Sequence record: MW825358.1
Length of the DNA: 64,000 bases
Direction: 5' to 3' (one strand)
The notes beneath the pieces are model-generated. The model had not been told where the DNA came from, ran no database searches, and saw only the letters and a program-made list of their open reading frames with translations. Each line of letters begins with the position of its first letter. The stretch's first letter is position 1. This document shows, piece by piece, positions 42 to 60,561 of this stretch. Position numbers and translations under genes: made by a program.

Positions 42-79
42 CCCCCTGCCTTCGCGCAGGGGGTTTATAGTGCTTTTTT
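42..79 (+). terminator. GC hairpin + T-tract
   Basis: ccccctgc-cttcgc-gcaggggg then tttatagtgctttttt. Confidence 0.65.
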
Positions 80-120
80 TACCCCATCGGCTTATTTAGT
101 GTCCAAAGGAAATATAAACC

Positions 121-139
121 TACACTATCTAAGTGTAGT
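121..139 (+). promoter_or_regulatory. early-promoter-like motif TACACTAT-N4-GTGTAGT
   Basis: Same motif and spacing at 35620 and 53423; resembles the phiKZ early consensus TATATTAC. Confidence 0.5.
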
Positions 140-159
140 CCATTAACACTGAGACATTT

Positions 160-2421
160 ATGGCCGCCACTCACGAACAGTACTTGGCTCTGCGCACGCA
201 AGTGCAGCAAGCCCAGGTCGATTATCACACCCATGATGCACCCACGATCTCTGATGCCGACTACGATGCCTTACTGGCCTCGCTGCGGCAATTAGAGGCG
301 GATCATCCAGAATGGGTGGAAGGTCAGTCTGTGACCGAACAGGTCGGTGCGCATATCAAGCGCGGTTTGTATCCGGTCACCCACCGCACTCCAATGCTTT
401 CGCTGGACAACGTCTTTGACCTGCCCGAGCTGGCAGAGAAGTACTTGCGACTGTGGAAGACGCCGGACTTTCATACCTCTTTTAAGTACGACGGGCTGGC
501 ATGTGAGCTGACCTATGTCAATCGCGTGCTGTTCGAAGCTGCTACCCGCGGTGATCGCTATACTGGCGAGAGCATCTTGCATAACGTGCAAGGCTTTGAC
601 ACGATTCCTAAGGGTCTGCCGCGCGGCGCGCCCGATGACCTGCGCGTGCGGGGCGAACTGGTCATGTTCAATGATGAGTTCGAGCGCTACAACCAGGCCT
701 TGATCGCCGCTGGGGAAACACCCAAGGTCAATCCACGCAACGCCGCCTCAGGGATTGCCAGACGCCTGCGCAGTGACAAACACATCGGGGCGCAGTTGGT
801 GTTCTTTCCCTACGATGTCCTGTTCCCAGATGGCGAAGGTCCCAAGACCTACGGGGAGAAACTCGAGCTAATCAGCACGTGGGGTTTTCAGTTCCCTTGG
901 CTGCCGGAGCAATCCAAACCCTCCTACCCGCTGAACCATTACCTCAACGATCGTCAAGCCGAACGGGCCACCTTGCCCTTTGGGATCGACGGGCTGGTCT
1001 TGCGTATCAACGACCTGGCCCACTGCGAGCGTTTGGGCTATACCTCGCGCGCCCCGCGCTTTGCAGTGGCCTACAAGTTCCCGCCTGAGGAAAAGACCAC
1101 GGTGGTGCGCAAGATCCGTCTGCAGATCGGACGCACTGGCAACGCCACGCCTGTAGCAGAGGTCGATCCGGTGGTCGTAGGTGGTGTCACGGTGACCAAT
1201 GCGACCTTGCACAACGAAGATCACATCAAGCGTTTGGATCTGGCCATTGGCGATACGGTCATGATTCGCCGCGCCGGTGACGTAGTGCCAGAGATCTCGG
1301 CGGTGGTCAAGCGCCCGATTGATCGGCAAGAGTGGTTCTTCCCGCAGTTTTGCGAATGCGGTGGTGAGCTGGTGCGTCCTGCCGGCCAGGCCAATCACGT
1401 GTGCATCGGGGAAGGGTGTATCTTCCAGACCCAGCGGGCCTTAGAGCATTTCGTATCCCGCAACGCCATGGACATTGAAGGACTGGGTGAGGAGCTGTTG
1501 GCCAAACTGATCTTGGTGGGCAAGGTGCGGTGGTTTCCAGATATCTACAAGCTCGATGAGAAAGACATCTTGGAAGTCACCAGTGACACCTCGACCCGCT
1601 ATGCCGAGGTGATCATCCAGGCCATTAACAAGAGCCGTAACACGACCGTGCAGCGCTTCTTAAATGCATTGGGTATTCCCATGTCCGGAGAAGGAACCTC
1701 CAAGCGTTTGTATGAGTGGTTCGGCTCTATCGAACTGATCCGCAAGGCCTCAGTTCGGATGTTGATGGCCGTCCCGGATATTGGTCCGACGGTAGCCCGC
1801 AGTATCCATGACTATCTGCACGGCACGCGCAATACCCAGTGGTTGGATGAGTTCTTGGTGCGAGACCAGGCGTTGGTCTTTACCGATGCCATGGGTCCGT
1901 GCGCGGACTTTGCCAAGTACATTGATCTGGAGCAGTTGCTGGATCTGTCAGGGATCAAGGGGATCAATGGAAAGAAGCGCCCCCAGGTCGTGCAGTGGTT
2001 GGAGATGCTGGGCTACCCGCAAGGTCACGCAACGATCCATCAGGTGGATGATCCTAAGTACCAACGGGCGCAGGAGTTTTACAACAACCATGCCACCGAG
2101 CTGTGGTCCTTGCAAAAGGATTGGCAGTTGATCCACAGTCACCTAGATCAGGTGCGTCAGATCCAGGGCAATCAACCCTTGGCTGGAAACACCTACGTGC
2201 TGACCGGCTCCTTTGATGAGACCATCGGCTCACGTGGGATGATCGGTAAGCTGTTGGAATCTTTGGGTGCCAAGGTCACCGGTTCGGTCTCTGCCAAGAC
2301 CACCGCTGTGTTCGTAGGTGATTCTCCAGGGGCCAACAAAGTGGACAAAGCCACCGAACTGGGAATTCCGCAACTGAACGACCAAGATCTGCAAGTGCTC
2401 CTGTCCAAACACTCGCAGTGA
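160..2421 (+). CDS. ligA: NAD-dependent DNA ligase
   Basis: HRTPMLSLDN, KYDG adenylation motif, NPRNAASG, DGLV, APRFAVAYKF, RAGDVVPEI, Cys4 zinc finger, HhH repeats and C-terminal BRCT (VTGSVSAKT..GDSPG..KVDKATELGI). Confidence 0.97.
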   Translation: MAATHEQYLALRTQVQQAQVDYHTHDAPTISDADYDALLASLRQLEADHPEWVEGQSVTEQVGAHIKRGLYPVTHRTPMLSLDNVFDLPELAEKYLRLWKTPDFHTSFKYDGLACELTYVNRVLFEAATRGDRYTGESILHNVQGFDTIPKGLPRGAPDDLRVRGELVMFNDEFERYNQALIAAGETPKVNPRNAASGIARRLRSDKHIGAQLVFFPYDVLFPDGEGPKTYGEKLELISTWGFQFPWLPEQSKPSYPLNHYLNDRQAERATLPFGIDGLVLRINDLAHCERLGYTSRAPRFAVAYKFPPEEKTTVVRKIRLQIGRTGNATPVAEVDPVVVGGVTVTNATLHNEDHIKRLDLAIGDTVMIRRAGDVVPEISAVVKRPIDRQEWFFPQFCECGGELVRPAGQANHVCIGEGCIFQTQRALEHFVSRNAMDIEGLGEELLAKLILVGKVRWFPDIYKLDEKDILEVTSDTSTRYAEVIIQAINKSRNTTVQRFLNALGIPMSGEGTSKRLYEWFGSIELIRKASVRMLMAVPDIGPTVARSIHDYLHGTRNTQWLDEFLVRDQALVFTDAMGPCADFAKYIDLEQLLDLSGIKGINGKKRPQVVQWLEMLGYPQGHATIHQVDDPKYQRAQEFYNNHATELWSLQKDWQLIHSHLDQVRQIQGNQPLAGNTYVLTGSFDETIGSRGMIGKLLESLGAKVTGSVSAKTTAVFVGDSPGANKVDKATELGIPQLNDQDLQVLLSKHSQ

Positions 2422-2426
2422 ATCAT

Positions 2427-2449
2427 ACCCCCGGTCTTCGGACCGGGGT
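2427..2449 (+). terminator. hairpin after ligA
   Basis: ccccggtc-ttcg-gaccgggg. Confidence 0.6.
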
Positions 2450-2472
2450 CTTAAAATCGAGAGATCAGACCC

Positions 2473-3246
2473 ATGACGTTGATTGCAGTAGTAGAAGGGT
2501 TGGTGATCGCCGACTCGGCCCGGATGACCAGCGCCGGAATGCAGTACAGTTCAGGTAAGATCTTTCCTTACCCCAAAGCGAGCAAGATGTGGTCGCGTCG
2601 TTTGAAATTCGTCGACCACTTCTTCGGCTTTGCCGGAACAGGTGAGGACGAGGCGATCCAAGCGGCCGGAGATATTGTGTTGTGTGGTGCGTTGGACCTG
2701 GTCACCGACCGCTATCGTGCTATGGACGATCTGCGTCTGATCAATGACTGGAATCAGTTCTCACTGCTTTTGTTTGGACTGCAGGGTGTGGCCGTACTGC
2801 ACATGCAAAGCGGAAAGGTCGAACTGGAGTATGAGCGCTATGACGTGCTGTCTTCAGTCTCCGTCGGTTCTGGGCATGCGGCTTTTAAACGCCTGTATTC
2901 CACAGACTACAAAACCAAGATCTGCCCGGTCCGGGCCTTTTATGGCACCTTTGCTTTAGAGCCCACATGTGGAGGAGAGATAGAGGTGTGGCGTATGCCG
3001 CTACACCGGCGCGATAAGCTCACTAAACTGGCGCAAATGCGCCAACGTACTTTGCCTGAAATCTTTCAGTTCATGGCAACTCCCACCAAGTACCATTTCA
3101 AAGAGGTTTCCACGACATGGCGATCCACCATTACCCAGCTCTCAGCAAAAAGGTCCAGCGCAAGATCACCCCGCAAAGCGCCGACAAAGACCTCCAGGCC
3201 GCAGCAGAAGCTGCAGGGATCAGCCGAGAGCAGTTCAACAAGCTGA
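2473..3246 (+). CDS. Ntn-hydrolase / HslV-proteasome-beta-like protein (putative)
   Basis: N-terminal M-T-LIA..ADS, later VGSG and xxxPTCGG, matching the proteasome beta/HslV layout; a similar gene lies at 42243. Confidence 0.55.
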   Translation: MTLIAVVEGLVIADSARMTSAGMQYSSGKIFPYPKASKMWSRRLKFVDHFFGFAGTGEDEAIQAAGDIVLCGALDLVTDRYRAMDDLRLINDWNQFSLLLFGLQGVAVLHMQSGKVELEYERYDVLSSVSVGSGHAAFKRLYSTDYKTKICPVRAFYGTFALEPTCGGEIEVWRMPLHRRDKLTKLAQMRQRTLPEIFQFMATPTKYHFKEVSTTWRSTITQLSAKRSSARSPRKAPTKTSRPQQKLQGSAESSSTS

Positions 3247-3431: not shown

Positions 3432-3435
3432 GTCC

Positions 3436-4427: not shown

Positions 4428-4630
4428 ATGTCACGCATCGGACATGGGCCTGGAAAACCAGTTCTCAAACTCAGTCTTGCCCTCGCGGCTTCGATGTAAC
4501 CCTTCTCTTAAGTGCAGTAACCCGTCGTGAGACGGCCGAAGATCTTCTAAGAGCGCAAGGGAAATGGTGGGCCAGCAACGTCCCCTACCGCATATCTCAG
4601 TCCCCTGCTTTCGGGCAGGGGACTTTATGC
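4428..4630 (+). ncRNA. candidate structured RNA in a 390-nt intergenic region
   Basis: Several stems, including ccctt-ctctta/taagag-aaggg enclosing a ccgtc-GTGA-gacgg GNRA hairpin; closed by a terminator-like hairpin. Confidence 0.3.
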
Positions 4631-5797: not shown

Positions 5798-5910
5798 TTG
5801 ATTCAGCTATCCAGCCCTCCCACCTGTGGGTGGGAGGGTCTATGCCGTCAGTTGATTTTTACCTACCTGCCTGATTGTACGTATCCCATAACCCGTGTGG
5901 AAAACCTGGT

Positions 5911-13947: not shown

Positions 13948-13994
13948 CGCGCCGTAGCGTCCGCCTTCTCCCCAAGCGGGAGGGGCGGGCGTAT

Positions 13995-14489
13995 ATGCCG
14001 TCGATTTATTTTTTACCGCACTTTGTGAAGGGTATGTATCCTCTATTCGCCAACACCATGAACACCACCTACGTCGACGCTAACCTCACCCTGCGCCCCA
14101 CTGCCACCCCCTTTATGCGTCAGGTGTTGCGGTCTATGGCTCAGCCGGATAACCCCAATGTGGCACTGATCGATCCGGCGCGCCTGCCTGTCCACCCGCT
14201 GTTTCACGATCAGCGCTGGACGCACATCTTCTGCAAGGTCCTAAAGTTGAGCACCACCAGTGCCGGTGTGCTCAAGATCCGTCTGTTGGGCGATATGGAC
14301 GGAGATGAGCAAGACGTGTGGCGCCTGCTGGACTGGCTCTTGCCTGCGACCTCCGTGGTCAGACAGTCGCGCTTTCGCAGGACCACCCTGGCCCGGGTCC
14401 GGCACTGCAACCGACCTGTTGGACATGAGGTGGTCTACTATCGACGCAACAATATGATCGATATGGATTACGTCACTCCTGGGAGTTAA
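13995..14489 (+). CDS. hypothetical protein (start uncertain; 14034 or 14058 more likely)
   Basis: Open ORF; the track ATG is the TATG of the upstream hairpin element. Confidence 0.55.
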   Translation: MPSIYFLPHFVKGMYPLFANTMNTTYVDANLTLRPTATPFMRQVLRSMAQPDNPNVALIDPARLPVHPLFHDQRWTHIFCKVLKLSTTSAGVLKIRLLGDMDGDEQDVWRLLDWLLPATSVVRQSRFRRTTLARVRHCNRPVGHEVVYYRRNNMIDMDYVTPGS

Positions 14490-16052: not shown

Positions 16053-16349
16053 AAGACATTCCTACCCTCCTGAGACGGCCTTTGTTAGGGCTGCCTCAGG
16101 AGGGTGTATGTTGTCGATTTGTTTTGTGCCTATTGGTATGTGCAAACTCTTTTCTTGTCCTGCATACATCGCTGAACGACCTTCACGAACCGGTCTTCAG
16201 CAACAAGGTTTGTGCCCTCTAGTACCGAGTGTAAAAAATTCTCAGGTCCCACTAGGGTATGCAGTGAGTCTGTCTAGACCACACATGGTTCGCTTTTCAT
16301 CAGTTGGCTCAAGCCCTGCCCGCTGACGCCTTTCTCCTTAGGAAACACA

Positions 16350-20603: not shown

Positions 20604-20637
20604 GCATAACCCCCACCCTTCGGGGTGGGGTTTATGG
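20604..20637. terminator. CATA-hairpin-TATG element
   Basis: gcataa-cccccaccc-ttcg-gggtgggg-tttatgg. Confidence 0.65.
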
Positions 20638-26748: not shown

Positions 26749-26786
26749 AACAGAGCCCCTCCGAAAGGAGGGGCTCTGTTTTATGG
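26749..26786 (+). terminator. hairpin-TATG element after the 2021-aa gene
   Basis: aacagagcccctcc-gaaa-ggaggggctctgtt-ttatgg. Confidence 0.7.
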
Positions 26787-30300: not shown

Positions 30301-30858
30301 GTGGTGAGCCTGGATGAGGGCAGTGGTGATGGTAACTTGAACTCGATCACGGCCACCGTGCTCGGCAAGCCCTTGAACCTGCTCTACTCCACTCCGTTGA
30401 TCACTCTGTCCTCTGGTCGTATGGTGCGTCAGCACTACTACGTGGCAGATAAGGTGACCGCGGCCGGTACAGCCACGATCAATGTGACCTTTGAGGCCAA
30501 CACGCATTACGCTATGCAGGCCCAGCGCTTCACCGGTGGTATTGCCACGGTGGATGTCACAGCGCCGGGTGGCTTTAATGCCACAGCGTTTGCCACACCA
30601 CATCCGACCGGTACGGTCAGTGCGACCATCGCCAACTCCGTTGAGGTCATCAGCTTGGTCGGCGCCACGGACATGTCCAATGCGGCATTGACTTTGCCCT
30701 CTGGCTTTACCTCGATGGGTGCAGACAACGTGGGTCCGTTGGTGGCGATCACTGGCTATCGCGTGCGCACCACAATCGGCAACATCGGCGGTACGATTAC
30801 CTCGATGAATGGCGGTTATGGTTCGGGCTGGGCAGCTTCTGCCTTGAACTTGTACTAA
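27340..30858 (+). CDS. fibre protein: Ala/Thr coiled coil + VCBS/cadherin-like Ig + propeller-like domain + Ig repeats
   Basis: A/T-rich heptads, GTMLVAVNGNYTFTP (VCBS-like), Trp-rich ~440-aa domain, two PVN..P..SG..LT...G.WSG..Y.WYR Ig-like repeats. Confidence 0.75.
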   Translation: MPHVHELPSVSPQTVADLRNVTGIVLLEQTVQQVQTDLGEAQDLAQAASTAASTATTTANTAKTTADTAKTTADTAAGNASTALQAANVAVAAAAEASTAVEEAQDQIDTAVADAATAKTLATSANTAASAADTKATNAGTAASNAQTTATAAQTAAGNAQTAANTAQAKADAADTKANNLRTDLDSLTDTVQAIQDQIGGVNQVPVATPITIDVDEDTVNYQGSVFDHVVDPDGDDMVVVESTYNSTKFNAGTQFNTVYGTMLVAVNGNYTFTPNATAQALNDGETGTVAFAILVRDARGGTATWNLTIRVIGSTDEAGGGDDDNTTFDALYDPSFKLIENQNFYSRPTMSKPSKMTSYTQPSYTDPVFGTKIFGLTRVNDTSDNITNLRHVYSRQTAINADNTRSIVRAGNGWWHLYNLQTGQRILGGRTQTPGFGALVDFINECECVWHPTNPKKLWRTGNQGAGCIWYEYDIDTMTTTVLFDLNPLLQALGGAWANAGRAWFKGEGRPSNDGRWWGFQVETASYGMIGLIMYDRQTNTIVGSALTTNRPDHVSTSPLGNYIVPSWYGGTTETLASSATRPMNEANGARAYSRDFSSFTQLSSLGEHSDLAIDAQGNEVFVSVSYRGGTSGQEPDVADGGIYYRRMDNGVAYSLPGNAYQDSSDGGVHLSGLATKKPGWAVVSWYGGTPKTWKDGVVYAVELTPDNPKTLRICHHQTVAQGAEAYIAESHAVPSPDMSMILFASNYGGSVVEDYYVGLPSWAFGVAGAGRPPVNQTLPAVSGQVTPNAVLTCTAGMWSGVGITYSYQWYRDSGTIISGQTTNSFTIPSGAAAGTQYYCRVTATNATDTVYAESNKITVQVPSAPVNTAKPTITGGSAVGSLLTAQPGTWSGLPTPDFTYAWYRNGTALGVTTRTYTANDLGDYTVQVRAENTQGFATEMSTVKTIVAAADPKAAVGSPVNTTNTWQSSGSIAVPSVAVGDSILLVVSLDEGSGDGNLNSITATVLGKPLNLLYSTPLITLSSGRMVRQHYYVADKVTAAGTATINVTFEANTHYAMQAQRFTGGIATVDVTAPGGFNATAFATPHPTGTVSATIANSVEVISLVGATDMSNAALTLPSGFTSMGADNVGPLVAITGYRVRTTIGNIGGTITSMNGGYGSGWAASALNLY

Positions 30859-30891
30859 GCATATTGCCCCTGCTTCGGCAGGGGCTTTATG
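30859..30891. terminator. CATA-hairpin-TATG element
   Basis: gcatatt-gcccctgc-ttcg-gcaggggc-tttatg. Confidence 0.65.
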
Positions 30892-30991
30892 TTGTTTTCT
30901 ATTTTTACCCCCTATTAGATGTGATTTCACACACCTCAGTGGAATCAATGCAGAGCCCTCTACAACCCCCCTTATTAGAAAGGCGAGAATA

Positions 30992-33121
30992 ATGACTGCA
31001 TATGAACGTGGCGTTGCCCTGTCAGGAATGGAGAATCGAAGCTCCACGCTGCCAGGCAAAGCCAACACCGACTACCTGGTGCCACGCGAAAAGGATTTTG
31101 CGTATTTCTCAAGCAAGGGATTTACTCTGATTCGACTGGCGATCACCTGGGAGCGCATGCAGCCTTCGCTCTTTGGCCCGTTGGACCCGGCCTTTAAGAA
31201 GCACGTTGATGCGTGTATCGAATTGGCCAAAAAGTACAACATGCGCATCTTGCTCGAACCGCATAACTACGGCGGGCGACGCGTCAACGGGGTCGGATAC
31301 AAGATCGGCACTCCGCAAGTGACGGTAGAGGCCTTTGCCGATTTCTGGGGGAAGGTGGCCATGGCCTACTCAGATGAGGAAGGCATCTACGGCTATGACC
31401 TGATGAATGAGCCACACACCATGCCAGTGGGCTGTACGCCGCTGACCTACCATCCCTCCAAGTTTGACTACATCACCAATCCGCGCTTTGAAGATGGAAA
31501 GTCCGGTTGGAGTATGGACAGCGTCTTTAAGATCGGCGATCAATGCGCCGAGTTTGACATCACTGGAGGTTGGGCCAATCTGACCTCGTACAATGCCAAG
31601 GGTGGCGGTATCCCGGTCGTGCCGGGGGCGACAGTGACCATCGAGTTTGACTACGAGTTGGAGATCACCTCAGGAAACGGTCCGCGCTTTCGCATTAGCT
31701 ACGGTGATAATGCCGCCTACGGAACGGAGATCTCAGGCACAGGTAAGACCTTAGGCAAAACCGTGGGCAAGGCCACCCACAAGGTCACCTTTACCGTGCC
31801 AGATAAAGCTGACATGGTCTGGCTGCGTTTCCAGAACCAGGGCGGTAATGTCAAGGGTAAGGTGTCTAATTTCCGCTACAGTGCCAGCTCCCTACCCAAG
31901 CGCCAGGTCGCCACCACCACCTTGATGAACCAAGCGGCCATTGACGCCATTCGCGCTGTGGATTTGAAGCATTGGATTGTGTTGGAGTTTGACCGTTACA
32001 CCGGCCTGGCTTCTTTCGGTGCCAACTTTGGTACGAACCCGGAAGTGTGGTGGTCTGATCCGGTCAACAAGACCATGCCTTCGTTCCACTACTACCAAGA
32101 CAGTGATTACAGCGGCTCTTACACCAAGGCTTGGACGCAAGGGTTGCGCGATCGCATGGAAGCTCAAGTGCGGTTGGTGTTTGACTGGGCCAAGCGTAAC
32201 AAGGTGACGGTGTTTATGGGCGAGTACGGCGTGCCTAACACTGAGGACAGTTCAGGCGAGAACTACCGCCAAGATCTGGATGCGTTTTTGACGCTGATGG
32301 ATGAGTACGCCATTCCGGGTACGTACTGGTCCGCAGGCTGGGGTTATACCTCACCGACTACGATCCACCCCACCGAGAACTATACTGTCGATCGCAAGGT
32401 TTTGGCCACGGTCCTGAAGCATCTGGGAAAGAAGGACACCCCGCCCACACCACAGCCGATTCCCTATGACCCGGAAACTGATCCGGCACTGTGGAAGGTG
32501 GATGATCTGGTGCGCCTGTCCTTTGGTGCTTCGTATAAGCGCCCAGAGGCCAATGCCAATGCATTCGTTTTTGAATGCAAGAACGTCAAGGTAGGCGATG
32601 TCCTCTCGCCCAACCTTAAGTGCACCCAAGGTCAGTTGATCGGGGCACGTTTGTCAATGGCTTCGATCTCTCTGCCGTATCGTAACTTTGCCTCTGGCAA
32701 GAACGGTCCGAATGATCGTCACCTTCCGCCGCATGCCTTGGGCGAGGAGACACGTGAGTTCTGGTATGGTAAGGGTAGCGTGCCGATGATCTTCCGGTTG
32801 GACAATGTTCCACCTGGGGTCTATGAGGTGGTCGTGGGTGGCGCTGCCCCCAGTACGGGTGTTTCAGATCTGTTCAAGGCCACGGTGAGCTTCCCGGCCG
32901 GGAAAGGAACAGGCGGTGTGTATGATGCCGATGGAGCCAAACCTGCCGGCAGTGATCAATGGTATTTCATCAGCAGTGACGTTGAACCTGTCAATGGTAT
33001 CTTGGACGTTAGTGTCGTGGCCGCCGTGGCAGGCGGACAGGCGTGTGTGAGTTTCATCACCCTGCGGCGCTTAAGTGCTCCGGTGCAGTATGAGACCTAT
33101 TTGCGGGAATTAGCAGCATAA
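30992..33121 (+). CDS. GH5 endoglucanase with inserted CBM4/9-like module and C-terminal beta-sandwich
   Basis: IRLAITWERMQP, EPHNY, YDLMNEP (acid/base Glu), HYY, GEYG (nucleophile Glu), YWSAG; insert YITNPRFEDGKSGW. Confidence 0.85.
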   Translation: MTAYERGVALSGMENRSSTLPGKANTDYLVPREKDFAYFSSKGFTLIRLAITWERMQPSLFGPLDPAFKKHVDACIELAKKYNMRILLEPHNYGGRRVNGVGYKIGTPQVTVEAFADFWGKVAMAYSDEEGIYGYDLMNEPHTMPVGCTPLTYHPSKFDYITNPRFEDGKSGWSMDSVFKIGDQCAEFDITGGWANLTSYNAKGGGIPVVPGATVTIEFDYELEITSGNGPRFRISYGDNAAYGTEISGTGKTLGKTVGKATHKVTFTVPDKADMVWLRFQNQGGNVKGKVSNFRYSASSLPKRQVATTTLMNQAAIDAIRAVDLKHWIVLEFDRYTGLASFGANFGTNPEVWWSDPVNKTMPSFHYYQDSDYSGSYTKAWTQGLRDRMEAQVRLVFDWAKRNKVTVFMGEYGVPNTEDSSGENYRQDLDAFLTLMDEYAIPGTYWSAGWGYTSPTTIHPTENYTVDRKVLATVLKHLGKKDTPPTPQPIPYDPETDPALWKVDDLVRLSFGASYKRPEANANAFVFECKNVKVGDVLSPNLKCTQGQLIGARLSMASISLPYRNFASGKNGPNDRHLPPHALGEETREFWYGKGSVPMIFRLDNVPPGVYEVVVGGAAPSTGVSDLFKATVSFPAGKGTGGVYDADGAKPAGSDQWYFISSDVEPVNGILDVSVVAAVAGGQACVSFITLRRLSAPVQYETYLRELAA

Positions 33122-33285
33122 ACCAGCAGCCCCTTCCGTCAGGGAGGGGCTGCTATGTTCTCGATTAAAATAAATCTCAAACGCAAACTATCTAGGTGAG
33201 CACCAGTGGTAAAAATCGAACTGCGCTGGTGATTCGAAAGTTGTCTATATCCATAAACCATCCTCACCATTTAAGGAGCTAATAA

Positions 33286-37851: not shown

Positions 37852-37964
37852 CCCATTGACCCCACCTGCCCTTAAAGCGGGTGGGGTTTATGCCGGTGAT
37901 TAGGTAAATCCTTATTCCACCTTTAGATAGTTTGAACCACTCAAAGTACAACGAAGGAATCGAG

Positions 37965-39653
37965 ATGTCCGAACAAATGCAGCCCGTCGGCACCAGCGTG
38001 CAGATGGCGTCGAAAATCAACTACCGCTTTGACCCGTTCTTACTTTCCTTGCACGTAGCCAGCAGTAAGGCGCTGAACGCCAGCGTGATAGGGCGTGACC
38101 AGCGGGCTCGAATTGGCTATGCCGCCGATATCTCAGGACGCGATATCTACGCGCTGTATCTGGCGTCTTTCCCCGAGGGTCCTGACCGTCTGGAGCACAC
38201 TTGCCGGTGCTGTCAAGACTTCTTTCGCCTCTACGGCAATCTGTTGCTGATCAATGAAGCCGGCGAGACCGTGTCGGCTTTGTTCTCCGATGACGGCCGC
38301 ACGCCTCAAGAGTATCGGGCATTTGTGGAAGCTGCCTCCCAGAAACTGGCTGGTGCCAAGGTCGGTTTACTGGAAGTCTCGCAACGCCCCGATGGTTACC
38401 TTCTCATCGGTAAGGCCCAGGCCGGTGGGTTCCATCATTTCCATTACGCCCTGCCGAAGGTGATGAATCGTCCCGACCTGACGCTCTCGGCAAAGCAGAA
38501 TGCGAAAGAGTACCGCGAGGATGCGCGCCTGCTGACCGAGTCGCTCTCGCGATGGAGAGAAGAAACGCTCCAACAGGCCATGGCCGCTTTCCAGAATGAT
38601 GAACATCTCTCCCGGACCATCCACGCCGAACACCTGACCAATTTCATGGCCATCCGGGCACAGAACCGGATCATCGCGGACCGGCGCCAGCGCCTCAACC
38701 ATCTGACTGTTGCCACTACCTTGTACTCCAAGGGTGTGGTGCGTATCGGACAGACGGTGTTGGGAGAATTCTTGGATCGTTTGGAAGTGACCAATTCTCT
38801 GCAATCTGCCAAGTCTCGCTTTTTGGTCATGATCGATCCGAAGGACTATCTGCGTCCTAAGGCCGCTCCGGCGCAGCAGACCATCGATCGGGCCGAGAAG
38901 ATCTTTGAGCAACTGGATCTGGCTCGCTCCTTGGACATGCGCTCGGTAACCCGTCCTGAGATCCTACCGCATGCGTTCTGGCGCCCGCCGCAGGTGTCTT
39001 CGGCACCGGCCAGTGGCGGGATTTTCTCAGGGATCAAGGCCAGGGACGCTTCTCCTGAGCGTGGAAAGCTCTTCGTTCAAGGCCCCACGATGTCCTGGCG
39101 CGGCTTTGTCCGTAAGATCTTGATGCGTCCGGCAGGTCAGGGACAGATCATGCGGTTGTCGGTTAATATCCCCCAGGCCCAATACACCGACCTGGTCACT
39201 GTGGCCACGATGCTCGATCCGAGCGGTGCGCCGTTGATGGGATGGGACAAACCTGAGCGCCGCAACCCTGCGGTGATCTACGGCTACGTCCAACCCACGC
39301 TTCCCCGGGACTGGGGTCTGCAGCCTGGTTGGCAGGACGTAGTGGGCATTGTCCCCAATGTCCCCGAGTGGTTCACTGAGGCAGATGTGGAGCTGGATCG
39401 CCACTTCCTGGTCCTTGCCCAGGGCTATGACAGCCGCGCACACGGCGGGCTGCCGTTGTTTCCGGTCAACTTGCGCCCTGAGTTGCATGAGGTGCGTTCG
39501 GTGATCGAGGCCTATGCCAAGACCAAGTCCATTCAATTCATCGAACAGGGATTGGTGATGAAGGCCTTGCACGGAGGCAGCTGCAGCATGCAGGTACAGA
39601 CCGAGTCCGACGACGGGGCGGTCACCACCTACCTGATCAATTCGTTCGAATAA
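37965..39653 (+). CDS. hypothetical protein with an HxCxCC motif
   Basis: YLASFPEG..EHTCRCCQDF; AAGGA SD before ATG 37965. Confidence 0.75.
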   Translation: MSEQMQPVGTSVQMASKINYRFDPFLLSLHVASSKALNASVIGRDQRARIGYAADISGRDIYALYLASFPEGPDRLEHTCRCCQDFFRLYGNLLLINEAGETVSALFSDDGRTPQEYRAFVEAASQKLAGAKVGLLEVSQRPDGYLLIGKAQAGGFHHFHYALPKVMNRPDLTLSAKQNAKEYREDARLLTESLSRWREETLQQAMAAFQNDEHLSRTIHAEHLTNFMAIRAQNRIIADRRQRLNHLTVATTLYSKGVVRIGQTVLGEFLDRLEVTNSLQSAKSRFLVMIDPKDYLRPKAAPAQQTIDRAEKIFEQLDLARSLDMRSVTRPEILPHAFWRPPQVSSAPASGGIFSGIKARDASPERGKLFVQGPTMSWRGFVRKILMRPAGQGQIMRLSVNIPQAQYTDLVTVATMLDPSGAPLMGWDKPERRNPAVIYGYVQPTLPRDWGLQPGWQDVVGIVPNVPEWFTEADVELDRHFLVLAQGYDSRAHGGLPLFPVNLRPELHEVRSVIEAYAKTKSIQFIEQGLVMKALHGGSCSMQVQTESDDGAVTTYLINSFE

Positions 39654-39754
39654 GTCTGGTTAAGTCCCCACCCTTCGGGGTGGGGACGTATGCTGTTCGT
39701 GTAAAACTAAACGTTGAAGGGGAATTTATTGAAACCTGTCTTCACGTGAATCTC

Positions 39755-43810: not shown

Positions 43811-44019
43811 TAGGAGGAAAGTGTGGTCGGCTTCATGGGTGTTCCCCGCTATCGTCGATAGCCTTCACTTCAACACATAAGACCCCGCCTCTAAAGGCGG
43901 GGCTTATGCCCAATCAAGATTTAAACAAGTAACTAAAGCTCAAACCTATACCATCGAAGAGATAGGGTTGTGTAAATTTTCATCTTCACGCCACATGCTG
44001 TAACACCAGGAGACATGTG

Positions 44020-44443: not shown

Positions 44444-44635
44444 TTAGGACGTCCCTCCCCAGGGCGTCCTAAGCCTGACTGCTGATCATCCCCGTGACGC
44501 AGTAAAGTCAATCAGGCCGCCGTGAGGCAACCCTGCGATTGACACGCGCGGAGGGCTCGTAACCCTCCCACTTATTTCTGAACTAAGTTCCCCAGCTCTC
44601 TTACTGTCAACAGCGCAGTAAGAGGGTGTTATGCC
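44444..44635 (+). ncRNA. candidate structured RNA (four consecutive stems)
   Basis: Stems taggacgtccct/agggcgtccta, gtcaatc/gattgac enclosing gcc-GTGA-ggc, ggaggg/ccctcc and ctcttactg/cagtaagag. Confidence 0.3.
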
Positions 44636-45748: not shown

Positions 45749-45929
45749 TACTTTTTCACACAGGCGCTTAAGCTTGTGGCAACACCCATCTGTTCTGTGA
45801 ACGAGGCAGGTGGTTTTTAAGCGTGCGCACACTTTGTGCAAACGCCACCATAGGCGACGGCCTATACCGCGCCAGCCTGGGCCCTCCAGGCTGGCTTCTA
45901 TGCTCCCTAGCATCTAACAAGGACCCACC

Positions 45930-47720: not shown

Positions 47721-47778
47721 TGCCCATAGCTCCCCTCCCGTTTGGGAGGGGAGTCTATGCGCTCAACTGAGAACCCCC

Positions 47779-49234: not shown

Positions 49235-49272
49235 GCATAAGCCCCTCCCCAAACGGGGAGGGGCTGTTATGC
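49235..49272. terminator. bidirectional CATA-hairpin-TATG element between convergent genes
   Basis: gcataa-gcccctcccc-aaac-ggggaggggc-tgttatgc. Confidence 0.7.
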
Positions 49273-49813: not shown

Positions 49814-49985
49814 TTCTGCTCCAAGGTAATTGTTGTAAATCTCATAGGATACCGATGGCGCCATAAGCCCGGGACTTCGGTCCCGGGCATGGCGAGTGCG
49901 CGTTGGTCATCCCATTGGACTCAAAATACAAATGGATTGGTCAATGAATTCGTGCGTCGCGTGCTCGAGTCATTGAATCTCTCCA

Positions 49986-54044: not shown

Positions 54045-54115
54045 GTACCATACCACCCCCAGGGGCCTTCGGGTCCCTGGGGCTTATCCTGCTTTTTTCA
54101 TAGGTCCATTCTACA

Positions 54116-55227: not shown

Positions 55228-55266
55228 CATAAGCCCCCTGCCCATTACGGGCAGGGGGCAATATGC
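55228..55266. terminator. bidirectional CATA-hairpin-TATG element between convergent genes
   Basis: cataa-gccccctgccc-attac-gggcagggggc-aatatgc. Confidence 0.7.
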
Positions 55267-55638: not shown

Positions 55639-55742
55639 TAGCTCCTAGTAGATCATTGGCCAATCGGGAGGATGGGCACTCTAGCTATCAATCTACATAG
55701 AATGAGCGGCATAACGAGGGGGACCGATGGTCCCCCTCGGGT

Positions 55743-57341
55743 TTATGACGGCAGACCCAACTCGCTCCCGCTGGGGGCAAACCAGGGGTTCTCATCTTCA
55801 CTACCCACCGGACCACCACCGGGTGTCTTGCGTGAACTATCGGCCTTGCCCAAGTCATCGCGCACCGCACCTGCCGGATAGAACGGCAACACGGTATAAC
55901 GGTACTTGATGGGCGTGTCCTTAGGTTTACGATGTTTACCGCGTTGGATGGTCAAGAACGAATCGCCATTGACCACTTCCTTGTGGATGAAGATTTCCAG
56001 ATCCACTTCCTGGTCGATCGTACCGCAGCTATCGTAGTAACCCTTACCCTCCAGATGCTTGACAAATTCATTCACACCCGCACGGGTCATCTTCTTTGCA
56101 TCGGTAGACAACTGTGCCGGGGTGATAAAGGTCACACCACGCGGGGCCATGAAGTTACGCACACGGCGGAACAGATCACGCACCTCAGAGCCGGTGGGAC
56201 CACCTTGTAAGCAACCGACCTTGGAGATCATGTTCAAATAGTCAAAGACAATGGCATGGATCTCATAGCCCTGTGCCTCGTACTGAGTGACCATGTCGCA
56301 GATGGACTGGTAGGTCGTGTTGGACGGATCGCAACGTCCCATCTCCACGTGGTAGCCATTGACCGACATACGCGTGGCGATGTATTCCTGCGCCCGGGCG
56401 ATATTGGCCTTGCGCACGTCCTCGGGGATATTGGGATCTTTGAACTGGCTGTCATCCACTTCCTGAAGGGTCTCGTTCTCCTTCAGCGAAATGTACAGCT
56501 GCACGATGTTCATGTGCAGTTCGTTTTCTGCCGAGATATGCAAGAGCAAGGGCTTCTTGGTGGGATCTCGCATATGTGGCTTGTTATACAGCGCCAGGTG
56601 CTTGAAGATGTTCAGCGTAAAGCCGGTCTTCCATTGGTGCTGCAGAGCGCCGATCAAGACAAACTCACCGCGACGGAATCCACCGTGATCGCCGAGCATC
56701 CGGTTGATGGCCTGGTAGCCAGTCTTCAAGATACCATCTAGCGAGGTTTCCTCAGCCGCTCGTTGGAACATGTACTGCACCCCTTCCACATCAGAGAGGC
56801 TGACCATGTTCAACATACCCGCTACTTTGAACTCCTCAGAGGCGGAGTTGCGGTAGGGTTCGAGCTTGTTATTCATCTCATTGATGATGTTGCGCCAGTC
56901 CACCTGCTCGGGTCGAAAGTTCACCTGAGAGGAGTACTGCTTCAGAATCTCCTTAATCTGAGTCTGATTGATATGATCACGCAACTCGCAGCGCAGCTGA
57001 ATGCACTGCCTCTTAAGGACAGGCAGTTCGACGTTCTCATCGACTGCTTGCTCGAAGGCATAGTACAAGCCTTCTTCATCCGCCGTGTTGATTCGTACAC
57101 GCTGCAAGATGCTGCTACGATCGATCTCCTCACCCGGTGGGGTATCAGACATCCACAGCACCGTCGTGCGCAACGTTTGAAGGACTTCTCGGGTATTGTC
57201 AAAGCCGCCTGAAGATTCCGGCACCTTGATTGTCTCGATCAGTTCTTTAACGAGATTGGCGGAGTGGACCGTGGGGTCTTTGAGCTGCCCTTCTTTGAAG
57301 AGCAGCGTTGCCATCTTGACCAAAAGCAGTTTCGGGTCCAT
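55743..57341 (-). CDS. dnaB: DnaB-like replicative helicase (phiKZ gp118-like)
   Basis: TGYQAINRMLG..GFRRGEFVLIGALQHQWKT, ISAEN, FDYLNM, TPAQL, DQEVDL, QRGKHR; lies next to the capsid gene as in phiKZ. Confidence 0.85.
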   Translation of the reverse strand: MDPKLLLVKMATLLFKEGQLKDPTVHSANLVKELIETIKVPESSGGFDNTREVLQTLRTTVLWMSDTPPGEEIDRSSILQRVRINTADEEGLYYAFEQAVDENVELPVLKRQCIQLRCELRDHINQTQIKEILKQYSSQVNFRPEQVDWRNIINEMNNKLEPYRNSASEEFKVAGMLNMVSLSDVEGVQYMFQRAAEETSLDGILKTGYQAINRMLGDHGGFRRGEFVLIGALQHQWKTGFTLNIFKHLALYNKPHMRDPTKKPLLLHISAENELHMNIVQLYISLKENETLQEVDDSQFKDPNIPEDVRKANIARAQEYIATRMSVNGYHVEMGRCDPSNTTYQSICDMVTQYEAQGYEIHAIVFDYLNMISKVGCLQGGPTGSEVRDLFRRVRNFMAPRGVTFITPAQLSTDAKKMTRAGVNEFVKHLEGKGYYDSCGTIDQEVDLEIFIHKEVVNGDSFLTIQRGKHRKPKDTPIKYRYTVLPFYPAGAVRDDLGKADSSRKTPGGGPVGSEDENPWFAPSGSELGLPS

Positions 57342-57372: not shown

Positions 57373-57903
57373 ATGAAAATTGTCTACATCCCTCAGCAGT
57401 TGTACCCTGCGCTCAAGAAGGCGGACCTTCGTTCGCAAGACTTGTGCAACGTTGATAAGCTGATGGGCACACTATCTGCGGACGACGTAGCTTTTTATTT
57501 CTGGGCTAATGACAAGGCCAACTGCCCCATTCCCAAGCCGCTGCAAGAATTCCTGCCCAACCTGATCTTCGGCGGAGTGATGCCCTTTACCGATACCGCG
57601 GCCTCCAAGTCGCTGCTGGGGAAGTTCAATCACTTGAAAATTCACGGTGCCGCTGCTGCACTGTATGAGAATGATGCAATCCTTACCAGTGATTGTATGG
57701 AAGAAGATCTGCTTATCATCACTCACACAGCCGCGTCCGACGCTGTCGCGGGTGAAAAGTCAGCCAAAGAGAGTACGGTATTCTATGACCGTATTATCCA
57801 GCAGCTGCTGGTTTTCCTTCCTGCCTCTGTCGTCCTGGGTTCGCCCGTTCTGCTGGGTTGGATGAAGTCGGTACAAACTGACGCGAAGCTCCCCAACGCG
57901 TAG
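57373..57903 (+). CDS. hypothetical protein between helicase and capsid gene
   Basis: Divergent from dnaB with a 31-bp gap; track start 57196 overlaps dnaB. Confidence 0.7.
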   Translation: MKIVYIPQQLYPALKKADLRSQDLCNVDKLMGTLSADDVAFYFWANDKANCPIPKPLQEFLPNLIFGGVMPFTDTAASKSLLGKFNHLKIHGAAAALYENDAILTSDCMEEDLLIITHTAASDAVAGEKSAKESTVFYDRIIQQLLVFLPASVVLGSPVLLGWMKSVQTDAKLPNA

Positions 57904-58152
57904 GTTTTAAAATTTGCCGTAAAACAATGCCTAATGATTTGGTAGTATTTTCTACCGGGGTTGAGCCCGAGCTGTCTATGAATACTTACTTGAGTACGTA
58001 TTTACGCACTTGCGCACTCCCCTCATTAGAGAGTGGTGGTCTAACGACTGCTCGCCCCGGTGGGCGGCAAGCCTAGGACCCCATCATTAGTTTAGCGGTG
58101 GGGAATAGGCTACTACTGCTGCCCTTACAAAACACACTCAAGGAACAAAGAA

Positions 58153-60420
58153 ATGGCTCTTCGTCTGAAAGCTGCCAAGTCGGCCCCGCTGTCCCAGCTG
58201 GCTGCCAACCTGCGCACCACCATCCTGGCCTCGGGTTCTGACCTGATTTCGGCCGGCACCACCAAGAACCTGCTGGCCTCGATGGAATCCATCGGTCAGA
58301 TGGAAGCTGCAAACCTGCAGAACGAGTTTGAGGCTGTTCGCGATAACCTGCGTTCGCAGATCCAGGGCATCAAGGGTCTGTCCCGTTCGTTCGGTCTGGA
58401 GTCGGAAGGCTCGGCTGAAGAGCGCGAAGAGGCCCAGGCCCGCTTCGAGACCGCGCTGGACGCTGGCGCGATGGCTGCCATGGCTGCCGGTAATCCGGAA
58501 GCCTACGCGCAGGCCGCTTACCTGGGTCAGGCCCAGGCCGCCCCGGGCGTGACCATCGTCGACACGATGGCCTCCGACAGCGCCGCTGCCATGGACTACC
58601 GTCCGGCCGTGGCCATGGAAGCCTTCAACGACAAGGAACTGCGCGATCACCTGCCGTTCTCGATCCTGTTCAACATCTTCGCTTCGCGTCAGGACGACTT
58701 CTCCGAGATGTTCTTCCCGACGACCGTTGTCGCCCCGGACCAGGCTGGTCTGGACGTCACCGTTGCTCGCATGCAGGTCTTCAATGAAGTCCGTCACGCC
58801 GCTTCGGGTGCCAAGGTTGATTTCGGCAAGCGCAACCTGATCGACGCCGCTGTCGACTACACCATCCTGGCCGACGAGCACACCCGTCTGATCCCGGTCG
58901 TGCAGCCGGACGGTTCGAGCGACGACAAGTTCGTTGCCGACACCATCGTTGCCCCCTTCATGGAGAAGGTTGGTAAGTACGAAGTCCCGACCAGCGCTCT
59001 GGCCCTGGACAAGGACATCGACCTGATCGGTATTTCGCAGTACCAGCCGCTGCTGGGCGCTGGCGTGATCGATCACTCCGACGATGTGGACGCTCGCGTC
59101 TCCCTCGACAAGCTGTACCTCCAGGCCGGTTCCGGCGTGGCCGTGGCGTTCAACGTCAACCGTCTGGCCCGTAGCCAGTTCAACAAGACCGTGGAAGGCA
59201 ACAGCCGTCTGCTGGGTCTGCAGTTCACCTCGACCGATCTGGTCATCGACAAGGACAGCAAGGCGATCGACGGCTCGGCCGTGACCGCGTTCGCTGGTAT
59301 CGTCTCGGGCAAGTACACCGTGCGTCTGTCGGTGAACGTCTCGGGTGAGCTGAACGTTGAGTTCGGTAACGTCAAGGTGTGGGCTGCCTCGGTTTCCGTG
59401 GCTTCCATCCAGGACGAGAACGGCAACAGCGTTCCGACCTCCGGTGGCGCTGGCGCCGCTGTGGTCACCGCTCTGGCCGGTCTGAAGATCGTCGGTTACA
59501 CCCTGCGTGCCAACCGCACCAACGCCAACCGTCGTACCCGTGGCCACCTGCTGGACACCGTGTATGAAACCCAGCGTTACACCATCCCGCTCGGCTCGCC
59601 GCTGTCGATCACCTCGCCGGTCACCGGTGACGGTTCGCGCGACGCTGCTGACCAGAAGGCCCTGATCGCTGCCGCTCGTATGCGCAACAGCAACAACGCG
59701 GTCACCGCGCTGTTCGCCATTGCCGACCAGCTGCGTGAAGCGACCCGTGGTCCGAAGCTGCCGGCGGGTGAAGTGTCCGGTGTGGGCGGCCTGGGCCGCT
59801 TCCTGGTCGATCCGTTCTTCGAAGAGCACGATCTGGATCTGGTCGAGAGCATCAACTCGATCAAGTCGCAGGACCGCGCCTACGACATCTCGGCCGTGCT
59901 GGTTTCGGCGATCCGTGATATCGCCTACCGCATGTACCAGAGCACCAAGATCCAGCCTGCGATCGATGCGCTGACCGGCGTTGCCGGCGAAGCCCCGGTC
60001 CTGCTGGTGGGTACCGACCAGGTCCTGATCCGTCACCTGCTGGTGAACGGTGACAGCCGTACCTTCGGCACCGTGTTCGACAAGGCCATCGTCAAGGCTT
60101 CCGTTGACCGTCGCGTCTACAACAAGATCTTCATCTCGTTGAGCCGTGCTGGTGCGGAAGGTCCGGACCCGCTGACCTTCGGTACCCATGGTTGGATGTC
60201 CGAGCTGATCGCGACCATGCCGATCAGCCGCAACGGCCAGACCTCGAAGGAAGCGACTGTCCAGCCGCGTACCCTGCACATCAACAACATGCCGGTCCTG
60301 GCGATCATCAACGTCAAGGGTCTGTCGAAGGTTCTGGTCGATAAGACCGCGACCCCGGCTCTGACCAGCGCTGGTGTGGCCAACGTGTACCTGGACGGCC
60401 TGAAGTACCCGACCCCGTAA
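58153..60420 (+). CDS. major capsid protein precursor (phiKZ gp120-like)
   Basis: 755 aa, AMEAFNDKELR..ASRQDDFSEMFFPT motif of phiKZ-like capsid proteins; strongest codon bias in the window; dnaB-capsid-RNAP synteny; two downstream hairpins. Confidence 0.88.
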   Translation: MALRLKAAKSAPLSQLAANLRTTILASGSDLISAGTTKNLLASMESIGQMEAANLQNEFEAVRDNLRSQIQGIKGLSRSFGLESEGSAEEREEAQARFETALDAGAMAAMAAGNPEAYAQAAYLGQAQAAPGVTIVDTMASDSAAAMDYRPAVAMEAFNDKELRDHLPFSILFNIFASRQDDFSEMFFPTTVVAPDQAGLDVTVARMQVFNEVRHAASGAKVDFGKRNLIDAAVDYTILADEHTRLIPVVQPDGSSDDKFVADTIVAPFMEKVGKYEVPTSALALDKDIDLIGISQYQPLLGAGVIDHSDDVDARVSLDKLYLQAGSGVAVAFNVNRLARSQFNKTVEGNSRLLGLQFTSTDLVIDKDSKAIDGSAVTAFAGIVSGKYTVRLSVNVSGELNVEFGNVKVWAASVSVASIQDENGNSVPTSGGAGAAVVTALAGLKIVGYTLRANRTNANRRTRGHLLDTVYETQRYTIPLGSPLSITSPVTGDGSRDAADQKALIAAARMRNSNNAVTALFAIADQLREATRGPKLPAGEVSGVGGLGRFLVDPFFEEHDLDLVESINSIKSQDRAYDISAVLVSAIRDIAYRMYQSTKIQPAIDALTGVAGEAPVLLVGTDQVLIRHLLVNGDSRTFGTVFDKAIVKASVDRRVYNKIFISLSRAGAEGPDPLTFGTHGWMSELIATMPISRNGQTSKEATVQPRTLHINNMPVLAIINVKGLSKVLVDKTATPALTSAGVANVYLDGLKYPTP

Positions 60421-60474
60421 TTGGGGCAGGTGCTTAGCGCAAAGCGTTAAAACAGTAGTAGCCTACTGTTCAGA

Positions 60475-60561
60475 AGCTGCCCCGCCTTCGGGCGGGGCAG
60501 TGGTTTTGCGTGGCATAACAGATTAGGCCAGACCGCTTTCGGGCGGTCTGGCTTTTATGCC
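60475..60561 (+). terminator. double hairpin after the major capsid gene
   Basis: ctgccccgcc-ttcg-ggcggggcag, then ggcataa..gccagaccgct-ttcg-ggcggtctggc-ttttatgcc. Confidence 0.7.

Follow-up and report, generated by a model that had tools for sequence, protein, structure and literature searches.

The quasi-palindromic elements of the form (G)CATA-[GC hairpin]-TATG(C) in the genome of Xanthomonas phage vB_XciM_LucasX, a phiKZ-like jumbo phage, are very probably intrinsic-type transcription terminators of the kind used by such phages, as homology and position indicate, and most of them are mirrored. The motif represents neither a new kind of promoter nor an RNA tag, but the stop signal that is already known from phiKZ and 201phi2-1. 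The window analysed here is a stretch of 64,000 nucleotides (186001-250000 of MW825358.1). In the LucasX record, several split RNAP-beta-like genes are annotated, as belongs to a split virion/non-virion multisubunit RNA polymerase, and the capsid protein shares 30-48% identity with chimallivirus capsids.

Elements and flanks

An earlier note on this DNA had listed eleven complete copies and eight with TATG only. All of these were found again (Table 1), with one of the TATG-only copies being ambiguous, because the following gene starts with an ATG that is part of its TATG (13994-13997). In the window, the copies are intergenic and placed 3' of stop codons. RNA folding resulted in z-scores of -4.5 to -7.9 for all 11 complete copies, and the MFE structure includes a CAUA:UAUG basal helix in 10 of them. 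Element limits were set by hand, as the helices of a sliding-fold MFE overran the flanks and gave wrong flank calls. A UUCG hairpin without flanks (60477-60500) is found just ahead of the last copy.

Table 1. Elements of the window and the polymerase gene referred to in the text (window positions)
Position	Strand	Feature	Remarks
42..70	+	hairpin CCCCCTGC-cttcgc-GCAGGGGG then TTTATAG	variant 3' box (TATA for TATG), without 5' CATA
2424..2455	+	CATA + UUCG-loop hairpin + TCTTAAAA	5' (mirror) half only; tandem + genes
4590..4630	+	complete copy, GCATA-hairpin-TATGC	z -5.8
5815..5845	+	hairpin + TCTATGC	3' half only
13961..13997	+	imperfect hairpin + TATATG	ambiguous (see text)
16063..16110	+	long hairpin + G-TATG-TTGTC	3' half only
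20604..20637	+	complete copy, UUCG loop	phiKZ-trained model match, E=9e-5
26749..26785	+	14-bp hairpin + TTTTATG, 3' half	GenBank ARNold terminator; phiKZ-trained model match
30859..30891	+	complete copy, UUCG loop	top phiKZ-trained model match, 38.3 bits, E=8e-8; ARNold-annotated
33116..33157	+	complete copy	upstream gene ends with the TAA of GCATAA; MFE without basal helix
35535..35584	+	complete copy, 16-bp stem	z -7.9
37859..37892	+	imperfect hairpin + TTTATGCC	3' half only
39664..39692	+	UUCG-loop hairpin + G-TATG-CTGT, 3' half	phiKZ-trained model match, E=0.03
43876..43909	+	complete copy	ARNold annotation on both strands; phiKZ-trained model match, E=2.5e-4
44595..44633	+	hairpin + TGT-TATG-CC	3' half only
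45871..45902	+	hairpin + TTC-TATG-C, 3' half	within minus-strand 50-aa ORF LUCX_266
47725..47760	+	complete copy	z -7.4
49235..49272	.	complete copy, AAAC loop	convergent junction; phiKZ-trained model matches on both strands
49862..49888	-	hairpin + TTATGG read leftward	between two minus-strand genes; stop box on sense side
54049..54090	+	CATA + imperfect UUCG-loop hairpin + CTTATCC	degenerate 3' box
55228..55266	.	complete copy	convergent junction; ARNold annotation on minus strand
55708..55747	-	complete copy	between two minus-strand genes
60512..60561	+	complete copy	3' of major capsid gene; ARNold-annotated
61884..63545	+	phiKZ gp123 homologue, nvRNAP beta-like subunit	mechanism context, outside the element

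In the whole LucasX genome there are 123 strong hairpins, defined by a perfect stem of at least 8 bp. TATG follows within 10 nt in 60 of them (2.7 expected, p~6e-65), CATA precedes within 10 nt in 54 (1.5 expected, p~4e-69), and 36 have both flanks (Fisher p=5.5e-4). On their respective sides, the two words rank first among all 256 tetramers, and about 78 hairpins bear the box. The window itself has 24 intergenic hairpins with perfect stems, 13 with 3' TATG, 11 with 5' CATA, and 9 with both, and intergenic TATG is more frequent there than in shuffled DNA (37 against 21.8 +/- 4.5 in dinucleotide shuffles, none of 500 reaching 37). Within genes, TATG and CATA are depleted relative to synonymous-codon shuffles (z -8 and -10) and rank only 51st and 34th of 256. 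A census of folding energies ahead of every TATG yielded only about 105 half-sites above the background, close to the 114 of the perfect-stem scan; this background is high at 55% GC, where 3-5% of control words reach -18 kcal/mol.

The flanks CATA and TATG are conserved as the earlier note had it, but they are longer than four letters and read about RCATAA and TTATG(C/T)YG. Read outward, the half-site is TTATG(C/T)YG on either side, alike in five phiKZ-like genomes, with a modal spacer of 2 nt to the perfect stem and a G three nt beyond TATG that is conserved to 67-72% in both halves. The stems (8-16 bp, with loops of 3-9 nt, mostly 4-6 nt) had been described as freely varying. This holds for their full turnover between LucasX and RTH11, where at orthologous junctions the flanks are kept and the stems replaced, but not for their composition, which is biased towards a C-rich 5' arm and a G-rich 3' arm (CCCCTCCC/GGGAGGGG), like in phiKZ. 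In the covariation alignment, 98.8% of the cells are paired, and both-sided changes occur at 8 of 8 model pairs (88 cells, as compared to 23.4 after shuffling, with none out of 500 shuffles attaining 88), a count for which the alignment was fitted to the model and palindromic sites were counted on both strands.

A long U-tract is mostly absent, also in agreement with the earlier observation: a run of at least four T after the stem is found in only 11% of the strong hairpins, as compared to 37% of the hairpins in phage XacN1. Among the first 8 nt there are on average 3.8 T (runs were scored within 10 nt), and the several consecutive U of a canonical bacterial intrinsic terminator are thus lacking in most cases.

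Gene junctions and strand asymmetry

Gene strands were taken from GenBank coordinates for the window, from annotated minus-strand blocks for LucasX, and from a codon-score gene caller for the other genomes, which assigned 2 of 294 calls to the wrong strand. Not used further were a stop-to-stop strand map, which was right for only 86%, and three ad hoc gene callers that under-called or over-called small ORFs.

A flank-bearing hairpin is present at 21 of 25 convergent and at 1 of 25 divergent LucasX junctions. All 22 hairpins at convergent junctions have a flank, 15 of them have both, and nearly every copy between convergent genes has the mirror CATAA box. In same-strand arrays, this box occurs at about 40% of the strong hairpins, or about 65% of the flank-bearing ones. 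Arrays of + genes contain ten copies that have only the upstream, antisense-facing box, which would fit a putative two-way stop, and about 20 copies with the 3' box alone, for which the helix partner is missing.

These positions also speak against the view that the elements are cassettes of a terminator and a promoter, in which the hairpin would end the upstream transcript and the adjacent TATG would be the late (nvRNAP) promoter of the next gene. The phiKZ late promoter is indeed 5'-TATG-3' with G as +1 (PMC4666361, PMC12809450), the word being bound on the non-template strand by a beta-lobe pocket of gp123, and the LucasX homologue of gp123 has kept most of the stacking residues of this pocket. 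In the compared part of the phiKZ transcript map, some late starts follow a terminator at a distance of 6-49 nt. A phiKZ late promoter is, however, placed upstream of the gene to be expressed and faces it, whereas the TATGs at the 21 convergent junctions face the 3' end of the gene on the other side and could fire only antisense, divergent regions, which need promoters only, are nearly devoid of the element, and the mirror box in + arrays would drive antisense RNA. In addition, the LucasX box is conserved past TATG (C/T-Y-G), whereas the phiKZ late-promoter logo shows no conservation beyond TATG (PMC4666361). In the stretch of the phiKZ map that was compared, which covers 59 of the 149 starts, none of the 59 comes as close as 2 nt to one of the 32 hairpin-TATG sites. 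Such cassettes are therefore improbable, and the hairpin-assisted promoter melting that the earlier note had offered as an option found no backing. Also hairpin promoters of the N4 type, which have a 5-7 bp stem with a 3-nt loop and lie upstream of the start, do not match stems of 8-16 bp with loops of mostly 4-6 nt at gene ends.

The elements are near-perfect inverted repeats with outer arms that are conserved on both strands, and this would also suit a function at the DNA level, be it as a cruciform, as the site of a dimeric protein in replication, recombination or packaging, or as a mobile palindromic repeat. Yet the elements are not strand-symmetric in detail. In tandem contexts, UUCG loops outnumber CGAA loops in the sense direction by 18:1 in LucasX, 36:1 in RTH11, 14:0 in phiKZ and 16:0 in Xoo-sp14, and where the pairing beyond the stem first departs from Watson-Crick, the pair is, pooled, G-U rather than A-C in a ratio of 45:20. 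Both biases point to a property of the RNA and thus speak against a palindrome that acts as DNA. The distance between the half-sites changes with the lengths of stem and loop, which does not suit a fixed dimer on B-DNA, and the sites follow stop codons and prefer convergent over divergent junctions. Copies of a mobile element, such as dispersed repeats of the REP or MITE type, are not to be expected either, because only the flanks are shared, with stems changing from copy to copy and from one orthologous site to another. A role as a DNA palindrome is for these reasons the most improbable of the alternatives.

Relatives and control phages

The flanks are present in five phiKZ-like phages of 37-58% GC, namely LucasX, RTH11, Xoo-sp14, phiKZ, and 201phi2-1. 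Among 68 hairpins of 201phi2-1, 23 have TATG and 29 CATA, and in phiKZ the upstream RCATAA mirror is found at 36 of 84 hairpins, being visible also within the published -60..+40 sequences as far as these were compared. XacN1, a jumbo phage which infects the same host genus as LucasX but is not phiKZ-like, has TATG at 2 and CATA at 7 of 108 hairpins and possesses ordinary A-tract/T-tract terminators instead. The assumption that the signal belongs to the phage lineage and not to the host is thus supported.

The covariance-model scan that had been proposed was run on LucasX. A model built with given structure from 11 in-register phiKZ copies replaced an earlier one in which MAFFT had misregistered the stems and which contained only 5 pairs. 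With this phiKZ-trained model, LucasX copies were recovered, with 7 elements of the window reaching E<=0.16, the best of them 8e-8, and 53 strand-matches at E<=1 across 295,651 bp of LucasX (without 250001-260000 of the record), with E-values that are rough due to a short calibration.

Goslar is another chimallivirus, and it forms a phage nucleus. In this phage, TATG is not enriched at hairpins (1 of 28), and because a chimallivirus can do without the box, the box is a habit of the clade rather than something that this type of polymerase requires. The same result argues against the nuclear-export tag that had been suggested, at least as a universal one, and it bears on the wider idea that the CAUA/UAUG basal helix mainly serves to process or stabilise RNA or to export it from the phage nucleus, with termination being secondary. 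The helix forms in the MFE structure of 35 of the 36 two-sided elements, the preference of G-U over A-C is seen in the sense direction, and the sequence is conserved beyond what mere pairing demands, all of which would be in line with such a function. Against it stand the + array copies with a 3' box alone, which have no partner for a helix, the lack of flanks in Goslar, and the conserved G beyond TATG, which falls just past the RNA 3' end in the compared part of the phiKZ maps; moreover, in the window no Rfam family was detected at its gathering score and no known processing site was matched. A mainly post-transcriptional role is thus even less probable than a promoter cassette.

RNA ends and the proposed two-way stop

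That the elements are terminators agrees best with the published RNA maps of relatives, in which RNA 3' ends map to the motif (PMC10914365, PMC11512511). For phiKZ, the terminator motif BCCYCCCCHWWDGGGRRGGBYTTATKYYGT, a hairpin followed by YTTATKYYGT, was derived from 61 ARNold-predicted intrinsic terminator regions with 3' ends determined by ONT-cappable-seq (Putzeys et al. 2024, Microlife, PMC10914365). On the phiKZ genome, 25 hand-picked ends from the compared part of the map, good to about 2 nt, lie between -3 and +2 from the G of TATG, with a mode of +2. The earlier note had included termination among its options, and the 3' ends of the relatives together with the convergent placement in LucasX make this the likely one. 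Its contrast to a rho-independent terminator of the host was overstated, as the elements are structurally intrinsic terminators, several of them have been annotated as such with ARNold by the depositors, and all eight 201phi2-1 terminators examined in a terminator-trap assay were strong in P. chlororaphis (PMC11512511).

The terminator would function as follows. The GC-rich stem-loop, which usually begins with the C-rich arm and in many copies has a UUCG loop, is followed about 2 nt later by the box TTATG(C/T)YG, which would take the place of the long U-tract. phiKZ RNA ends at the G of TATG or 1-2 nt beyond, at a distance of about 8 nt from the stem. UUAUG must therefore be transcribed, and by the standard geometry of intrinsic termination it would be part of the RNA-DNA hybrid at the moment of hairpin formation. 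The upstream CATAA can be regarded as the same box on the other strand, and transcription would thus be stopped from both directions. The two-sided nature of the signal that had been proposed is borne out insofar as both flanks carry the same outward box. After release, the sense RNA could form pairs between its upstream CAUAA and the 3'-terminal UUAUG, resulting in a fully paired 3' end that should resist 3' exonucleases.

Two-way stopping has not been the interpretation for 201phi2-1. In the text of that study, a motif A is described as resembling the phiKZ motif, motifs A and B together form an elongated hairpin at 21 of 132 terminators, and the long stem is seen as a means of resistance to antitermination (PMC11512511). 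The elongated hairpin fits the CATAA:TTATG basal helix of LucasX, and motif B, as far as it is described there, probably corresponds to the CATAA half. In six phages including phiKZ, only 9% of the mapped terminators were antisense to genes (PMC10914365).

The polymerase pocket and significance

A point of wider interest is whether the TATG pocket of the polymerase also reads the stop box. When the elongating polymerase exposes TATG right after the hairpin, the pocket could re-engage, and the resulting pause would place the RNA end at or just past the G. It would make one four-letter word both start and stop for this polymerase family, and it would explain why the word has persisted over a GC range of 37% to 58%, why it occurs in mirrored form, and why it is absent from XacN1, a phage of the same host genus that relies on the host polymerase. 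A comparison of the gp123 pocket residues did not separate the box-bearing phages from Goslar, which has no box, and lends weight to neither side. A polymerase-specific stop signal that is more than a short U-tract is a tentative idea that we consider rather unlikely.

For annotation, the findings are of direct use. The terminators of the LucasX record are ARNold predictions only, and the box-bearing hairpins allow a fuller annotation of gene ends, as is likewise possible in RTH11 and Xoo-sp14. The range of the phiKZ terminator motif now includes Xanthomonas phages with a GC content of 55-58%, and in each of the five phiKZ-like genomes that were tested the mirror half is a general feature. As putative compact two-way terminators, the elements may serve as parts for work with Xanthomonas.

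Comparison with known systems

LucasX, a phiKZ-like phage, has several hallmarks of phiKZ-type terminators, namely the arms of the stem-loop, the 3' box, the position at gene ends, and recognition by the phiKZ-trained model. Like the phiKZ motif, the elements consist of a C-rich/G-rich stem-loop and the 3' box TTATG(C/T)YG after a spacer of about 2 nt, and they are intergenic and follow stop codons. LucasX differs from phiKZ in its stems, which are longer and vary more, in the base next to TATG, which is mostly C rather than mostly T, and in a genome of 55% rather than 37% GC. With the bacterial bidirectional intrinsic terminators they share the palindromic build, the location between convergent genes, and the pairing of the upstream arm with the 3' tract, but where those have an A-tract and a U-tract, the LucasX flanks are not homopolymers but the specific word CATAA/TTATG. 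The phiKZ late promoter, finally, has the same four letters TATG, the same phage lineage and the same polymerase, whereas in LucasX the TATG comes after a hairpin, is mirrored, and is found at gene ends and convergent junctions.

Occurrence and anatomy of the element

The window is 100% identical to positions 186001-250000 of MW825358.1, the genome of the Xanthomonas phage vB_XciM_LucasX (LucasX; 305,651 bp, 54.9% GC). LucasX is a phiKZ-like phage with several split RNA-polymerase-beta-like genes; capsid protein identity is 76% with RTH11, 48% with Xoo-sp14 and about 31% with phiKZ and 201phi2-1. The LucasX paper reports "47 Rho-independent terminators" by ARNold and contains no promoter analysis (PMC9009655).

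All eleven complete copies of (G)CATA-[GC hairpin]-TATG(C) and all eight copies with only the TATG flank were found where the earlier note had placed them. The complete copies have folding z-scores of -4.5 to -7.9, and ten of the eleven include the CAUA:UAUG helix in the MFE structure. The whole LucasX genome (from the record) and those of RTH11, Xoo-sp14, phiKZ, 201phi2-1, Goslar and XacN1 were scanned for perfect inverted repeats with stems of at least 8 bp (strong hairpins; imperfect ones are missed), strand contexts in the relatives being taken from our own gene caller. Among 123 strong hairpins of LucasX, 60 have TATG within 10 nt 3' (2.7 expected), 54 have CATA within 10 nt 5' (1.5 expected) and 36 have both, and no tetramer is more enriched than these two on their respective sides. 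Also against shuffled intergenic DNA the excess holds, with 37 intergenic TATG in the window versus 21.8 +/- 4.5 in dinucleotide shuffles (0/500 reach 37), and long U-tracts are indeed mostly absent, at least four T in a row following the stem in only 11% of hairpins. On the mostly coding + strand of the whole genome, TATG occurs 753 times versus 414 for its complement CATA; in a synonymous-codon shuffle of LucasX genes, both are depleted and neither is an outlier among tetramers.

Read outward on its own strand, either side shows the identical box, a modal 2-nt spacer, (T)TATG, C/T, Y and G, and judged from the sequence the element is thus one half-site arranged as a palindrome, roughly RCATAA-hairpin-TTATGYYG. 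Stems do not vary freely, as the earlier note had claimed, since the first arm is biased to C-rich sequence; at orthologous LucasX/RTH11 junctions, stems are nonetheless fully replaced and flanks kept. A TAA stop is often found 3-6 nt ahead of CATA in phiKZ and LucasX (TAAC-R-R-CATAA), so that the element starts right at the gene end; in one LucasX copy the half-site itself supplies the stop codon.

Coordinates of individual features (window or record MW825358.1)
Position	Feature	Remark
Window 13994-13997	TATG of a TATG-only copy	overlaps start codon
Window 30855-30897	best match of phiKZ-trained covariance model	E=8e-8
Window 33116-33121	upstream GCATAA half-site	TAA is stop codon of LUCX_247
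Window 38248-38290	ARNold "terminator" in GenBank	inside LUCX_254 coding region
Window 45768-45920 (-)	LUCX_266	50-aa ORF alone in + array
Window 45871-45902	terminator element	overlapped by LUCX_266
Window 60477-60500	hairpin, UUCG loop	without TATG/CATA flanks
Window 60512-60561	complete copy	in tandem with preceding hairpin
Window 61884-63545 (+)	gp123 homologue	
Record 166783-166803	flank-bearing hairpin in divergent region	outside window; about 45 nt upstream of LUCX_180 start
Window 124, 33187, 35623, 43950, 44672	second motif	first base of ACyATC core
Record 25503, 58902, 64167, 70124	second motif	first base of ACyATC core

Probable termination rather than promotion

Four lines of evidence point to the LucasX elements being terminators and not promoters. 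Hairpins with at least one flank occupy 21/25 convergent versus 1/25 divergent junctions, and all 22 hairpins at convergent junctions are flank-bearing, 15 of them on both sides. A promoter, which the earlier note had also considered, would yield only antisense RNA at convergent junctions. For phiKZ, starts and RNA 3' ends from supplement parts 7 and 13 of bioRxiv 10.1101/2023.10.13.562163 were placed on the genome, and of the 59 starts in these parts none lies within 2 nt of any of the 32 hairpin-TATGs in the same stretch, while seven lie 6-49 nt beyond one. The 3' ends in these parts span positions -3 to +2 relative to the G of TATG (mode +2, about 8 nt past the stem), which indicates that the box is transcribed and occupies the U-tract position. 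In same-strand arrays, sense loops are UUCG versus CGAA at 18:1, 36:1, 14:0 and 16:0 in four genomes, and beyond the stem, the first non-Watson-Crick pair is G-U versus A-C at 45:20 (pooled). The observation of the earlier note is confirmed and its interpretation supported in part: termination fits, and position and phiKZ starts speak against a promoter.

The sole flank-bearing hairpin in a divergent region reads leftward as hairpin plus TTTATGCC; possible roles are attenuation in a leader or stopping antisense RNA of LUCX_181.

The mirror half

Same-strand arrays of LucasX carry the sense-side box at about 35 hairpins and the mirror box (upstream CATAA, the same box on the other strand) at about 30. 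The G three nt beyond TATG is present in 67-72% in both halves, mirror included, and since by the phiKZ maps used here it falls just beyond the RNA 3' end, retention for pairing with that end is unlikely. Ten copies carry the mirror box alone, and their loop is UUCG in the sense direction. The shared G and these ten copies fit a mirror half that would act as an independent stop for antisense transcription, and in phiKZ, 3' ends in opposite directions occur as pairs at such hairpins between convergent genes (PMC10914365; bioRxiv 10.1101/2023.10.13.562163). The CAUAA:UUAUG helix forms in 35/36 two-sided copies and may give the released RNA a 3' end that is base-paired.

Neighbouring signals and annotation

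A second intergenic motif, about AAA-N-AAACCTAyACyATC, often has a short inverted repeat (ACACTATC..GTAGTGT) after it. Its copies stand 36-144 nt ahead of start codons, and a terminator typically precedes them by some tens of nt. The arrangement is reminiscent of phiKZ, whose AT-rich early promoters stand 23-30 nt behind the TTATG box, and the motif may be the early (virion polymerase) promoter of LucasX. LUCX_266 is probably a spurious gene call. The ARNold site within LUCX_254, at which the scans found no CATA/TATG flank, may be no more than a fortuitous hairpin. Two hairpins stand in tandem immediately after the major capsid gene; for 201phi2-1, too, paired terminators near the capsid gene have been reported (PMC11512511).

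Relation to known terminators

The two-sided flank enrichment extends to RTH11, Xoo-sp14, phiKZ and 201phi2-1, whereas XacN1, which shares the host genus but is a jumbo phage outside the phiKZ-like group, has A-tracts and T-tracts in place of the box; TATG enrichment was not found among the strong hairpins of Goslar (1/28).

Flanked strong hairpins in the genomes compared
Phage	TATG 3'	CATA 5'	Strong hairpins
RTH11	57	50	139
Xoo-sp14	29	38	76
phiKZ	32	36	84
201phi2-1	23	29	68
XacN1 (control)	2	7	108
Goslar	1	6	28

Speculatively, the TATG-binding pocket of gp123, the phiKZ nvRNAP beta-like subunit, might also take the box as a signal to pause or stop. This pocket is described as incomplete in the transcribing complex (PMC12809450). 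The LucasX homologue (29% identical) retains S144, F151, H185, K190, H331, S334 and Q466 and is aromatic at 399 and 406; Goslar retains much of the pocket and lacks the box, so that pocket residues do not decide the question.

By its sequence, the LucasX half-site is the motif BCCYCCCCHWWDGGGRRGGBYTTATKYYGT already published for phiKZ terminators, which was derived from 61 terminator regions at RNA 3' ends that ONT-cappable-seq had mapped (PMC10914365). The covariance-model scan that the earlier note had proposed bears this out: a model from 11 phiKZ copies recovers seven window elements at E<=0.16 and, at E<=1, yields 53 strand-matches across 295,651 bp of LucasX. In the alignment, which was fitted to the model and counts palindromic sites on both strands, 98.8% of cells pair and 8/8 pairs show double-sided changes, a count reached by 0/500 shuffles. 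Motif A of 201phi2-1 is the same motif, frequently accompanied by a motif B that makes the hairpin longer, and strong termination was seen for all eight 201phi2-1 terminators assayed with a terminator trap in P. chlororaphis (PMC11512511). The LucasX elements are probably a further instance of this already known terminator type.
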